Source: Octopus sinensis (Eukaryota). From it: a stretch of DNA of 64,000 bases. Below the pieces are notes generated by a model. The model saw nothing but the letters and a program-made list of their open reading frames with translations. It did not search any database and was not told the origin of the DNA. The position numbers and the translations under genes are program-made. The stretch lies in the NCBI RefSeq assembly GCF_006345805.1, contig NC_043012.1:13454001-13518000 (forward strand), in the 5' to 3' direction. This document shows positions 3,554 to 64,000 of this stretch, piece by piece (position 1 is the first letter of the stretch; every line of letters starts with the position of its first letter).

Positions 3554-4669
3554 ATGAATATCAGAAGCGGCATACTCGTTTTCTTCTATATACCGCATAT
3601 ATTTGCAAGTTCTTATTTAACTGACCGTGATTTAAGAGATACACTTCTTAAAGGTTACAACAAAGATGTTCGTCCTGTACGAAATATTACCCAAAATCTA
3701 AATATTGATTTATATTTTAAATCAGTCGTTATATACAATCTGGATTTGTTTGAAGGAATATTACATAGTAAAATAATTATAGAGTCTAGATGGAAAGACG
3801 AATATCTTTGCTGGGATCCCATCAAATATGACAATCTAACTCAAATAGAATTCCAATCTGACTCCATTTGGGCACCGAATATATTTGTAAGCAATGCAGA
3901 AAAAGTTACTAAAGGTTCAGGTTTTAGTGAATATATTACAGTGAGTTATGACGGAAGGACATCCTATTTAATTCGAAGCATTTATCGTACATACTGCTCG
4001 ATTGACTTTTACAAATATCCTTTTTCATTCAATAAGTGTAAAATATACTTTTGGTTATCCAATGAAATGGTCTCATACCTGACGTTACAAACTATAGATT
4101 TCACTAACACAACGAATGTATGGACAACCATTTGGAATATTCAACTAGATGGCCATAAATATGAGGACGACAATTCGACAGACGGTTTCCAATTAATAAT
4201 CATGTTAGAACAGTCTTCATCTGCGAATAATGTTGCGATAATTATAGGAATTTTGTTGCTATCATTACTGACGATATGCATATTTCTTTTGCCTGCAGAG
4301 AGTGGGGAGAAGGTTACATTTTCAACTACACTCTTTCTCACCAATATTCTCTATCTTGTTGAAAGTGGGAGAGCGATAAGTACGAATGGGTCAGAAATAC
4401 CTTTGTATCTACTTTACATACTTTATCTGACAACAGCCAGTAGTCTTTCCTGTGTTGGATCTATCTTTATCTGTCGGCTCTATCAACACTCAGTACTGGA
4501 AAAGAACCTGAACCAACAGTCTGAGAGTCGATACAAGGAAAATGTTCAGCCAAGGAAATGTGGAAAACTATCTTTAAATTACACACAACTTAACCGACTC
4601 TCACTTTTTATCACTCTTTGTTTGTTCGGGTCTACTCTTCTTCTTGTGATTATTCACTTTTTCGACTAA
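3554..4669 (+). CDS. Cys-loop ligand-gated ion channel subunit, atypical nAChR / chemotactile-receptor-like (CR-1 here), single coding exon, 371 aa
   Basis: Contains a signal peptide, GYNKDVRP, WKDEYLCW, WAPNIF, the Cys-loop CSIDFYKYPFSFNKC (C-x13-C), LPAESGEK before M2, four hydrophobic TM segments and a short M3-M4 loop. There is no vicinal CC in loop C. Confidence 0.95.
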   Translation: MNIRSGILVFFYIPHIFASSYLTDRDLRDTLLKGYNKDVRPVRNITQNLNIDLYFKSVVIYNLDLFEGILHSKIIIESRWKDEYLCWDPIKYDNLTQIEFQSDSIWAPNIFVSNAEKVTKGSGFSEYITVSYDGRTSYLIRSIYRTYCSIDFYKYPFSFNKCKIYFWLSNEMVSYLTLQTIDFTNTTNVWTTIWNIQLDGHKYEDDNSTDGFQLIIMLEQSSSANNVAIIIGILLLSLLTICIFLLPAESGEKVTFSTTLFLTNILYLVESGRAISTNGSEIPLYLLYILYLTTASSLSCVGSIFICRLYQHSVLEKNLNQQSESRYKENVQPRKCGKLSLNYTQLNRLSLFITLCLFGSTLLLVIIHFFD

Positions 4670-4677
4670 CCTAAAAT

Positions 4678-4753
4678 ATATATATATGTGTGTGTGTGTG
4701 TGTGTGTGTGTGTGTGTGTGTGTGTGTGTGTGTGTGTGTGTGTGTGTGTGTGT
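4678..4753. repeat. (TA)/(TG)n microsatellite immediately after the CR-1 stop codon
   Basis: Directly visible. Confidence 0.97.
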
Positions 4754-6522
4754 AGACACACATACATACAAAAAAGACTTAGTAAATATTGTTGTCAATT
4801 ACGTATTTTTAATCGCAGATACGAAGAAATATATCAAAACATTACATTTCTTCTTACCCAACGGCGTTTGTATTTTCCTTTTGAAAAAGCTTGTTCCCAA
4901 TACCCAAAATATTTACTGTCACAAATTACTCCAATCTCTACTGAGATTGTAGCAATTATTTTTGAGAATTGTTTTAATGACTTTATGAAGATTTTATAAA
5001 TGCATAAATTCTTTAAAATTTCTGGTTAAGGAAAACATCATTAGAAAAGGCCTTTCATACTGGTTTTCAAGTGTAAGTGAAAGAATTGTACTCATACACT
5101 AACCCAGTAATTTCGATGTTTATTCTATAGCAAAATTATGACCAAGTGCTGGTTGCTTACATAAAATTATGATTTATTCTTGTCTTTGCTGGCGAATCAC
5201 ATTTGTATATCATAAGAGAATTTTCATTTTCACAGAATAGTAAGTCGCTGTATAAAAGATCTACAATTTAACAAAATTCAATAACAATTAAAATGAAGTC
5301 ACTCTGCATGTCTCAGATCCTTAAATGCAAGACAAGTAATACTGGAAACGGAAGTTAAATAAGTAAAAAGAGCGTTTAGCTAAGTGATATTTACTTGTCA
5401 AAGTTAAGTGTAGAATATTTAGAAATGAAAACCCTGTTGATGTCAAAAATTCTGATTTATAGTTTTAATCTGTTGGGATGTATAAATCGAATTATAAACT
5501 ATTTTCAAATGTTTACTAATTATTTGTAATTTCTAAATTTACAAAATATACCACTGTTTTGACTTATTAGCAATTTCCTGTGGATGGTCAGGTATACTCA
5601 GTGATTGTCACTAAGGGATTTGTGTAAGCCATTTACGAAAATCAAAATATTCATAATGATTGTTTTCATTCTATGTTGTCATTATTAAGGTAGAATAACT
5701 GATGTCATTACAATTTCAACTTATAAGAATTATGAAGAACACATCGTAATTTTTGTGAGATGAAGTAATTTCAATAAACAACATTACATCATTCCGATAT
5801 GTAGTTGCTACATTGTGTATATACATAAATATTCTTAGTTGCAGACATATCACAAATTCACACAACCAGGTGAACCGTAGTATTTCCGAGTTCTATCCAA
5901 GATTTCGGAAAAGGCCATTGGGAAGGCCTACATAACGATGTAAAGATGGATTTAGTTAAATTATTTGAATAATAACATCGCATAGTGTAGTCGATACAGA
6001 GATACAGTGATAAATATGCAAGAACGTATTATGTATGTATATTTGCACGCAAATATTTATGCGTCGTATTGGTACGAATGGAAGTTGTGTAGGAGTGATT
6101 TGACTTACAAATTTGCTTTTGGTGCAATTTTTGTATTTTATATCGTTATTTATTTTTGAATCGTGGCATTTATCGATTAAAATAGCTAATCTTTTATAGC
6201 AGAAATGCCATTTCCATAATGTACTTACGTGAAATTCTTATGTAATACAGTCAATAGAAAAGAGAACTCCAATATGTGGTATCAGTATTGTTTTGTGTTG
6301 AATTGAGTGCGCGCGGAGCCATATAAACATTGATGTCGGGATCAATTTCCGGTGGTTCGGCTCATCTTTTTTTCAGTCAATCTTTTAGGTTTAGTCGCTC
6401 TAAATAGAGAATATATTATTATTGTGTACATAATTATAGTTATCATTAAAGGACCTCTGTGTGACGCTCTTCCCCGTAATTAAAATTCTTCGGGTTAATA
6501 TATATATATATATATATATGTT

Positions 6523-62175: not shown

Positions 62176-62366
62176 CTGTTGTGTCTGGGGAGAGTCATTT
62201 TCTTTTTGTGCGTTATAATGTAACGCACTCACCGGTAAAAAAAAAAATAAGATAAAAAAATAAATAAAAATAAATTAATAAAACAAAGTAATAAGTAGAA
62301 ATTTTACCGTTGAGTATGTTACATTATAAGGCACAAAAAGAAAATGACTCTCCCCAGACACAACAG
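62176..62366. repeat. Foldback element: 65-bp inverted repeats around a 61-nt A-rich spacer
   Basis: 62176-62240 matches the reverse complement of 62302-62366 with 4 mismatches. Confidence 0.92.
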
Positions 62367-63561
62367 AAATGCTCCAACACACGAAGTCATATAAAGAATC
62401 TTGCAAACCAAATCCAAAAACGAAATATAATAAGCTTTAGTTAAGGATATATTTTTAAGTATTAAGAAATCATGTCGTGGAAGATGTGTAAATGCCGTTA
62501 TGCATTAAATAGATAGCTATTGATATTATTGACAATACTTTAGTGGCAAGATATCTTTATTGAGTGTCTTAAAATGGTGTTCACTTTGTATAGACTCAAA
62601 CAATCTCTAGGTGAAGAAACCGACTTGTCCTATATTGGAGGAAATAGTCAATTAATATGCCATGTAAAACCAACACTATTAGATTTTAAAAATTAAGCAG
62701 TGTATCACATCGATCTTTTTTTTATGACGTACGTGTTTTACCAGGACAAAAAGTAGAAGCCTTAAAGCAATAAATACTAAAACTCATTGTGAGACATCTA
62801 TGAAGCACAAGTGATATGTTTGAATCCAAACAGTATCCCTGGTTTATTCCTGGCTTATACAACGACTGTGAAGAAGAAGATATTTTTACAGTACGTATAA
62901 ATATAAATCCTACAACACTTTGCAACGTATGGCTAATGCGGGCTTTATCGTAAATTATTTGCAACTTAAATGGCAGATTAATCGCAAATGTTCATAAGTT
63001 CGTTTGTGACAAAATATTTTTTTCATTTTAAAAATTAAATGAAAAATTTACACAGTAGTTAGCTGATAGTGAAATAAATTCAATACTTAATGGGTCTATA
63101 TATATGTCCACAAATAAAATTACAAATAATAAAGTCTTTATCATAACCAAACACCTGAGATTTCTAGTACATCCCCAGGATAGAGTTTTTGATAACAATC
63201 AAATGATAAACTGATGTATGTTCAGTTGGTTGAATTTTGGTTTGTTTTATATATAGTTTCAGTTGACTTCTGTTCAATTATTTCGTTTCCATTATTTTCT
63301 CTAATATGCTGAGACATGTTTTCAGGCAGTAGCTGTTCAGTTTTCTAGCATCTAAGAATATAATTTCAAATTATTTTTTAGAAGAGCGAAAACGAACGGA
63401 CACTGACCTGTGGCATCGTTTAGATATATTCGACGATGTTAAAATTGTCAACCATTCTTATCCATAGAGTTGTTTATTCCGTCAAGTTTATATTTCAGGT
63501 TATCACGTGCAGTAAAGATGTAATAAAATATATTGGTATTCGTTTTAATGATTTGTTATTG

Positions 63562-64000
63562 TTAAATAGAGTCTGATGAAACAATAATGATATAGAGTAG
63601 AAGGAATAAAACACTTGCTGACAAAATGGATTTGTCTAGCATCTGATGTTTTATTCGACATTTCTTAATGCGCCTTTTAGATTTTGTCTTAATAATTGGT
63701 TCATCTGCGTTTCCTATGATCCCGATTTTATTTTTCGATCCGTTTGTTTCTTGATCCTTTTCTGAAATTGTGATGGCGCCAGACTCGTGGGCGAACAGTT
63801 TACACACAATTACAGAGCTGATAGAAGAAAAACCGCTTACAAGTGTCAGATTTAAGAGGTATATCAAATATATAGAAGGTTCACGGGAATTATTACCCAG
63901 TTTTTTCTCAGTTTCAGAAAGATAAACTATATTTGCTAGAAAAACAGTAATTGCAACAGAAACTTTCTCTCCAGAAGAAGCCGGCAATACATAGACAGAT
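63562..64000 (-). CDS. Chemotactile-receptor-like Cys-loop channel subunit (CR-5), 3' part only; 5' end outside the window
   Basis: Open from the window edge: SVYVLPASSGEKVSVAITVFLANIVYLSETEKK, M3, GSKNKIGI (shared with CR-2 and CR-3), M4, stop at 63562. Confidence 0.9.
   Translation of the reverse strand, partial: SVYVLPASSGEKVSVAITVFLANIVYLSETEKKLGNNSREPSIYLIYLLNLTLVSGFSSISSVIVCKLFAHESGAITISEKDQETNGSKNKIGIIGNADEPIIKTKSKRRIKKCRIKHQMLDKSILSASVLFLLLYIIIVSSDSI

Follow-up and report, generated by a model that had tools for sequence, protein, structure and literature searches.

We analyzed a stretch of 64,000 nucleotides (nt) of Octopus sinensis DNA, here called the window, which spans ~13.454–13.518 Mb of the 59.47-Mb chromosome record CM016874.1 (GCA_006345805.1); window positions are record positions minus 13,454,000. 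An earlier reading, made from the bare sequence and called here the sequence-only reading, had described the locus as a tandem cluster of five intronless Cys-loop channel genes of the chemotactile receptor (CR) type, accompanied by pseudogenes. The open reading frame (ORF) listing and tblastn identified four complete single-ORF genes for pentameric ligand-gated ion channels (pLGICs), named G1 to G4, and a fifth, G5, that is cut by the window end (Table 1). This agrees with the four complete and one partial single-coding-exon genes reported earlier, and with their places. The term "partial" applies to G5 only inside the window, however: its full ORF occupies one frame of 382 amino acids (aa) at L002 25916-27064, equivalent to window positions 63562-64710, with the start 710 nt past the window edge, and the gene is complete.

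The genes matched one another in tblastn with E-values from 1e-16 to 1e-148, so that the core of the earlier observation is real and far above chance. G2 and G3 are 61% identical at the amino acid level (75% at the nucleotide level), and G4 is ~38–45% identical to G2 and G3. The description of a tandem cluster of five was right for G2–G5, which lie head-to-tail on the minus strand and are the only truly tandem genes, but not for G1, a plus-strand gene that converges on G2 and has only ~30% identity to the others. G1, the divergent member, also belongs to another subclade than G2–G5.

Table 1. Features of the window, with orthologs and public gene models of the five channel genes. Positions are window coordinates.
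Feature	Position	Strand	Description	Orthologs (identity)	Public O. sinensis model
G1	3554-4669	+	Complete single-exon gene, predicted CR family, 371 aa; Pfam Neur_chan_LBD 1.8e-30	O. bimaculoides XP_014771421, intact 371-aa ORF (88%)	177 aa, spliced over 10.9 kb; disagrees with the conserved 371-aa ORF
G2	15854-16978	-	Complete single-exon gene, predicted CR family, 374 aa	P0005 (88%); P0003 (82%)	P0004; correct
G3	24262-25404	-	Complete single-exon gene, predicted CR family, 380 aa	P0002, O. bimaculoides (93%); P0001, another octopus (80%)	456 aa, extended upstream; disagrees with the single-exon ORF
G4	40594-41688	-	Complete single-exon gene, predicted CR family, 364 aa	P0018, O. bimaculoides (73%)	P0019, 330 aa, start at internal Met35; disagrees with the 364-aa ORF
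G5	63562-64000 in window	-	Last 145 codons and stop of a complete 382-aa single-exon gene, predicted CR	P0006, O. bimaculoides, 382 aa (86-87%)	P0010, 379 aa over 17 kb; chimera with an N-terminal pseudogene fragment 17 kb upstream
G2 5' flank	16979-17203	-	Alignable with the G3 5' flank (25405-25505, 25661-25750) by blastn
ORF	614-1594	-	326 aa, poly-Ile low-complexity start; weak zf-RVT match, E=3.8e-4, below the Pfam cut-off
Minisatellite	7451-7870		52-bp unit, 8 copies, 97% matches
Short ORFs between G1 and G2	9574-11423	-	In different frames; 10627-10902 matches Pfam PIF1-like helicase, 7.7e-16
Direct duplication	22277-22987 and 23187-23914		~730 bp, 95% identical, TA/CA microsatellite-rich, just downstream of G3
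TA run	22760-23254		~250 copies
Dispersed repeat	26819-26968, 40324-40451, 54417-54570		~130-155 bp, three copies, 70-74% identical

All four complete proteins matched the Pfam domain Neur_chan_LBD (1e-27 to 1e-30), with a weaker match to Neur_chan_memb. Each has a C-x13-C Cys-loop with a YP(F/L)(D/S) core, and a vicinal cysteine pair (CC) was found nowhere in G1–G4. Hydrophobic segments for M1, M3 and M4 are present in the same four proteins, in which the M3 and M4 segments are separated by only 38–50 residues. A GEK motif precedes M2 in all five genes, within the sequence P-A-E-(S/T)-G-E-K in G1–G4 and P-A-S-S-G-E-K in G5. The presence of the Cys-loop, the missing vicinal cysteines in loop C, the GEK motif and the very short M3–M4 loop had all been noted in the sequence-only reading and were found as described. 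The 9' Leu of M2 and the -1' Glu, which belongs to the GEK motif, are kept as in the octopus chemotactile receptor CRT1 and in alpha-type or cationic nicotinic acetylcholine receptors (nAChRs), and by this signature the pore is predicted to be of the cation type.

An AlphaFold 2 (AF2) model of G1, with a mean pLDDT (predicted local distance difference test) score of 64.8, contained 10 strands, forming a beta-sandwich, and four transmembrane helices. When this model was compared with folds in the PDB, the CRT1 structure 8eis came out on top, but the E-values of nAChRs came within a factor of ten of it, at TM-scores of ~0.5. The comparison thus confirms the fold of G1 without discriminating between a CR and an nAChR.

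Each of the five genes consists of one unbroken ORF, which opens with a signal-peptide-like sequence, ends with M4 and is collinear with CRT1 and with the orthologs. As read from the DNA alone, the coding sequence of G1–G5 therefore appears to be intronless. Among the public O. sinensis models of the five genes, only that of G2 is correct and the other four are wrong (Table 1), and the current (v2) O. bimaculoides model of the G1 ortholog, with 286 aa spread over 23 kb, is inconsistent with the intact 371-aa ORF. Exact-sequence look-ups of the G1 and G3 proteins gave no match, the ORFs not being those of the public models. Ortholog-bearing Logan contigs behaved as genomic DNA, not as transcripts. 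One Logan contig, L005 (SRR11869385, from another octopus species), followed the window collinearly in the region upstream of G3, apart from a gap of ~2.55 kb (window 26.7–29.3 kb versus L005 1592-1669). This gap was considered as an intron and rejected: its boundaries lack GT/AG and the flanks align through, indicating a genomic indel.

In a search against all solved structures, CRT1 (8eis/9e6b) was the best match, with 168 bits for G3, 160 bits for G1 and 145 bits for G4. The best acetylcholine (ACh)-gated subunit reached 93 bits for G3, 97 bits for G1 (nAChR alpha4) and 83 bits for G4 (nAChR beta2), so that CRT1 was ahead by 49–75 bits of any ACh- or serotonin (5-HT)-gated subunit for these three proteins. 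The squid receptor CRB1 (8eiz) matched them with 93–103 bits. A word-indexed homolog search returned Octopus proteins only. When 1.84 billion cluster representatives were searched exhaustively, 853 proteins matched at E≤1e-30, with scores dropping steeply from 608 to ~190 bits and then leveling off on a plateau near 155 bits.

A neighbor-joining tree was built from 187 units and 329 columns with 100 bootstraps, after fused multi-unit models had been split into their units. All window genes fell inside a clade of 35 units that also holds CRT1 and the CRB1-like sequences P0052, P0055 and P0058. Within it, G2, G3, G4 and G5 (the last represented by its public model, P0010) belong to a subclade of 22 sequences with a bootstrap value of 100, whose named members are all Octopus, while G1 grouped with P0036 and P0046 (bootstrap 75), close to the CRT1 group. 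P0052 matched the squid CRB1 structure with 293 bits, and P0077, the nearest sequence outside the clade, had classical nAChR alpha subunits as its best match. Because a CRB1-like sequence falls inside the clade and its nearest outsider is nAChR-alpha-like, the 35-unit clade most likely represents the cephalopod CR family, with the window genes inside it. Comparison with known CRs and canonical ACh-gated subunits had been proposed as one check on the sequence-only reading, and both the structure search and the tree place the genes with CRT1 and CRB1.

To compare the ACh-binding site, we aligned G1–G5, CRT1 and other CRs with 15 alpha-type units that keep the loop-C Cys pair; replacements are given here in the order G1 to G5. 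On the principal face, the alpha-type loop A motif W-x-P-D-x-x-x-Y-N has lost its Asp, and its Tyr has become S/C/C/C/C; the Trp of the loop B motif G-S-W-T is replaced by S/R/G/E/E; and loop C, with the alpha-type pattern Y-x-C-C-x-x-P-Y, is shorter and lacks both the cysteines and the flanking Tyr. On the complementary face, the loop D Trp is replaced by I/V/V/V/I. The P-P motif of loop E is absent as well. The loop B Trp occurs in none of the 35 CR-clade units, compared to 87 of the 152 units outside the clade. The loop-C Cys pair, which no CR-clade member has, is missing in 172 of the 187 tree units, and its loss alone is therefore not diagnostic; what is decisive is that the principal and complementary faces have lost their residues together.

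Automatic annotation has named the orthologs "acetylcholine receptor subunit beta-type unc-29-like" and "delta-like", which implies a different identity, namely that of ordinary ACh-gated nAChR subunits acting at synapses or neuromuscular junctions. The pLGIC fold and the cation-type pore would fit such subunits, and non-alpha nAChR subunits are likewise without the loop-C Cys pair. We nevertheless consider this identity extremely improbable. Both faces of the site are affected, with the loop A Tyr, the loop B Trp and the loop C Tyr and CC missing from the principal one and the loop D Trp from the complementary one; the genes are placed in the CRT1/CRB1 clade, apart from classical subunits, and score better to CRT1 by the 49–75 bits given above. 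The short cytoplasmic loop and the intronless coding sequence also argue against synaptic nAChR subunits, as do ratios of nonsynonymous to synonymous substitution rates (dN/dS) of 0.22–0.47, which are high for synaptic receptors.

A second mark of the clade, derived in this analysis and not a published criterion, is a pair of cysteines, one at the position of the loop A Tyr and the other five residues after the Cys-loop (C107 and C161 in G3). Both are present in G2–G5 and in CRT1, and both are missing from G1, which has S113 and W167, and from its O. bimaculoides ortholog. The two cysteines covary perfectly: 30 of the 35 CR-clade units have both and five have neither, and the pair is found in none of the 152 non-CR units. 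Members of the CRB1-like subclade have Y/Y, H/Y or A/S at the two positions. The covarying cysteines probably form a clade-specific disulfide.

The published ligand pocket of CRT1 is not retained in the window genes. At the positions of CRT1 Y58/W122/F124/S169/F192, G1 has I/L/R/T/T, G2 has V/H/D/R/I, G3 has V/H/D/L/I, G4 has V/Y/E/G/K and G5 has I/H/D/T/I, so that none of the five residues is conserved in any of the genes. The vestibule glutamate E104 of CRT1, which has been linked to Ca2+ permeation, is replaced by G/A/S/K/T in G1–G5, from which a lower Ca2+ permeability than in CRT1 is predicted. Because the pocket residues are not conserved, the window genes are expected to have other ligands than CRT1. 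The two loop-E positions that match CRT1 W122 and F124 (H133 and D135 in G3) lie nine and seven residues before the first cysteine of the Cys-loop. Here, 19 of 20 sequences of the G2–G5 subclade, from several octopus species, have the pattern (H/Y)-x-(D/E); in the CRT1/G1/CRB1-like group the same positions are hypervariable. One speculative explanation, which we put forward only tentatively, is that the large octopus-only expansion containing G2–G5 may have a function of its own among the CRs, characterized either by shared recognition of a polar or cationic group or by a role as the complementary face in heteromers. If so, the G2–G5 subclade would differ from CRT1-style hydrophobic contact sensing, the pocket of the CRT1 group being hydrophobic and hypervariable.

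Taken together, these results suggest that the window is very probably a 60-kb piece of the O. sinensis CR gene cluster, encoding nAChR-derived cation-channel subunits. The assignment to the chemotactile type without an ACh site, as made in the sequence-only reading, is thus upheld by CRT1 as the best solved match, by placement in the CR clade and by the loss of all ACh-site residues. Several observations count against this interpretation. The bootstrap value of the 35-unit clade is only 72, in a distance tree, and the position of G1 within the clade is weak (19–75). Identity of the window genes to CRT1, which is the one member studied well, reaches only 30–34%. With H/Y and D/E in loop E, their pockets are also less hydrophobic than the CRT1 pocket, and the notion of a poorly soluble ligand may not carry over to them. 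Finally, public gene models put upstream exons on G1 and G3, and the absence of introns covers the coding sequence, not the 5' untranslated region (5'-UTR).

CRs have previously been described as nAChR-derived, tandemly clustered, intronless channel subunits that form homo- or heteropentamers and bind hydrophobic molecules instead of ACh, with up to 26 of them in O. bimaculoides (PMC11526382; 10.1101/2025.03.03.641191). A 2026 preprint placed 14 O. sinensis sequences in a CR clade and restated the idea of retroposition (PMC13174522). A literature look-up by ortholog accession found no paper, and one by SRA run turned up an unrelated paper only. Since the clustering, the lack of introns, the heteromers and the non-ACh ligands have all been published for CRs, the sequence-only reading represents the correct recognition of a described family that is already known, not a discovery.

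On this basis, each gene very probably codes in a single exon for one subunit of a pentameric Cys-loop channel of the predicted cation type, the subunit having a signal peptide, a beta-sandwich ligand-binding domain, four helices and a short cytoplasmic loop. Expression in the suckers, the ligands and heteromeric assembly are inferred for the window genes from the published family (PMC11526382; 10.1101/2025.03.03.641191). By analogy with that family, five subunits, alike or mixed, would assemble in sensory cells of the sucker epithelium, and a poorly soluble contact chemical would bind in the pocket at the subunit interface. The pore would then open, cations would enter and the sensory cell would depolarize. 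The array itself grew through local duplication, and the decay of some copies is seen just outside the window.

Some or all of the five genes may instead be CR genes for obligate partner subunits, which would form no ligand-gated channel alone and would only tune heteromers built around other CRs. CRs reportedly combine into many multimeric complexes, and CRT1 and CR840 alone have been highlighted as good homomers (10.1101/2025.03.03.641191). The loop-E pattern, kept in 19 of 20 sequences and not diversified, would fit a shared structural or complementary-face role. However, no sequence feature separates such partner subunits from homomeric ones, and all of the genes have complete ligand-binding and pore domains under constraint. 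We therefore regard an obligate partner role as possible, though on the doubtful side.

Somewhat less likely still is that the genes are CRs used outside the arm suckers or for another modality, for example in the hectocotylus, the olfactory organ, the lips or internal tissues. The founding description of the CRs reportedly located the family in the sensory epithelium of the suckers, which speaks against this. In its favor are the pockets of the window genes, which differ from that of CRT1, and the finding of CR expression in the hectocotylus, which for many CRs exceeds the levels seen in normal arms (10.1101/2025.10.28.685082).

The preferred interpretation of the genes as functional members of a CR array was examined further by comparison with their orthologs (Table 1). 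By the Nei–Gojobori method, dN/dS was 0.47 for G1, 0.44 for G5 and 0.22 for G3, the last calculated against P0001 from a more distant octopus. Such values suggest that the proteins are under constraint, yet evolve faster than typical synaptic receptors. Synonymous divergence (dS) was 0.12–0.16 between O. sinensis and O. bimaculoides and 0.64 between G2 and G3; the duplication that gave rise to G2 and G3 is therefore several times older than the split between the two species. At the DNA level, blastn aligned 15873-17079 around G2 with 24287-25505 around G3 (75% identity over 1228 bp) and 17111-17203 with 25661-25750 (73%), which shows that the presumptive duplicated unit included ~100–230 bp upstream of the ATG.

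The arrangement of the genes is also shared between the two species. The O. bimaculoides record CM046615.1 (58.16 Mb) carries the G5 ortholog on its plus strand at 38.171 Mb and the G1 ortholog on its minus strand at 38.249 Mb. The two are convergent in both species, at a distance of ~76 kb in O. bimaculoides versus 59 kb in O. sinensis. The same record has a CRT1-like gene, P0026 (62% identity to CRT1), at 38.048 Mb, which puts it ~123 kb away from the G5 ortholog. In O. sinensis, two other intact CR genes flank the window, P0007 at 94 kb to its left and P0008 (375 aa) at 24 kb to its right, and the CR array thus measures at least 184 kb. No CR sequence was found in the 19 kb immediately left of G1.

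The pseudogenes that had been reported in the stretch could not be recovered there. None was detected in the window by tblastn with G1–G4 (E≤50, word size 2; best stray match E=0.35), by a hidden Markov model (HMM) of the CR clade that was compared without filters (--max) with all 3322 six-frame fragments of 12 aa or more (best stray match E=0.06) or by blastn of the gene DNA together with 2-kb flanks. Two stray fragments, at 8807-8929 and 68-406, both on the minus strand, were considered as pseudogenes and rejected as a hydrophobic stretch and low-complexity sequence, respectively. Real pseudogenes lie between G5 and P0008, 8–16 kb past the window end, in a field at L002 10001-18761 that is equivalent to window positions 71865-80625 (71.9–80.6 kb). 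One copy in this field is 96% identical to P0008 and has a frameshift near codon 93, another is riddled with stop codons, and a C-terminal fragment contains stops. The field also holds an N-terminal fragment, 17 kb upstream of G5, which is the one that was joined into the chimeric model P0010. Comparable frameshifted debris is found upstream of the O. bimaculoides G5 ortholog (L004 1729-4362). The earlier proposal of birth-and-death evolution is therefore supported by the decayed copies in both species, although the evidence for it lies outside the window.

Pseudogenes are common next to the window, and one or several of its genes might be drifting toward the same fate despite an open frame. 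The likeliest case is G4, which is the fastest-diverging of the five, at 73% identity to its O. bimaculoides ortholog versus 86–93% for the others. Its N-terminus is atypical, without the conserved R-P motif, and the model of its ortholog lacks M4. At the same time, G4 has an intact 364-aa ORF with the Cys-loop, the clade-specific Cys pair, the GEK motif and four hydrophobic segments, and forms a 100%-bootstrap pair with its ortholog, with moderate branch lengths. We consider such drift quite improbable.

Apart from the channel genes, the base composition of the window ranges from 0.28 to 0.37 GC, with abundant TA and CA microsatellites, and an Rfam scan of the window found no RNA family. The short ORFs between G1 and G2, with their match to a PIF1-like helicase, appear to be a decayed element of the Helitron/PIF1 type, and the ORF to the left of G1 is probably a retroelement remnant. 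The repeats at 21.8–23.9 kb, where the direct duplication and the TA run are found, yield long spurious ORFs (poly-YI, poly-HT). The dispersed repeat may be a SINE-like (short interspersed nuclear element) sequence; two of its three copies are near G3 and G4.

The closest known system is CRT1 of O. bimaculoides (PDB 8EIS, 9E6B-D; UniProt A0A0L8FVQ9). The window genes share with it the ~370–400-aa size class, the Cys-loop, the GEK motif and the short M3–M4 loop, as well as the loss of the ACh aromatic box and the loop-C CC, the intronless coding sequence and, through P0026 near the G5 ortholog, the chromosomal neighborhood in O. bimaculoides. They differ from CRT1 in that G2–G5 form part of a separate, octopus-only subclade and in the replacement of the pocket residues and of E104. 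Squid CRB1 (PDB 8EIZ) is tied to the CR clade through its relative P0052 and ranks second among the solved relatives of G1 and G4, behind the two CRT1 sequences. Its scores are 45–75 bits below those of CRT1, and the CRB1-like subclade lacks the Cys pair.

Canonical nAChRs (such as human alpha7, alpha4/beta2 and Torpedo alpha) have the fold, the Cys-loop, the GEK motif and the 9' Leu in common with the window genes and represent the ancestral family. In contrast to the 432–623 aa of nine single-unit alpha-type representatives, however, the window genes encode only 364–382 aa in total, lack the ACh-site residues, have an M3–M4 loop of 38–50 aa and are intronless in their coding sequence. A further resemblance is to the orphan channels of lophotrochozoans, Alpo4 and the "CR-like" clade of MolluscaGenes, which are also without the signature ACh-binding motifs and whose ligands are unknown (PMC10338036; PMC13174522). 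These channels are widespread in gastropods, bivalves and annelids, whereas the window genes belong to the cephalopod CRT1/CRB1 clade, and G2–G5 carry the Cys pair that none of the 152 non-CR units has.

The octopus CRs are a textbook case of the recent conversion of a neurotransmitter receptor into an environmental sensor, and to our knowledge, in-depth studies of them are limited to CRT1 and CR840. The window adds no new principle to this case and is an ordinary part of a known cluster. Its value lies in the corrected coding sequences of five uncharacterized O. sinensis CRs, four of which are mis-modelled publicly. The genes are conserved, constrained and in syntenic order with O. bimaculoides. 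Two sequence markers, the clade-specific Cys pair and the conserved acidic loop-E residue of the G2–G5 subclade, could help to annotate and subdivide the CRs, and the practical value of these results lies in annotation and in the choice of candidates for de-orphanization.

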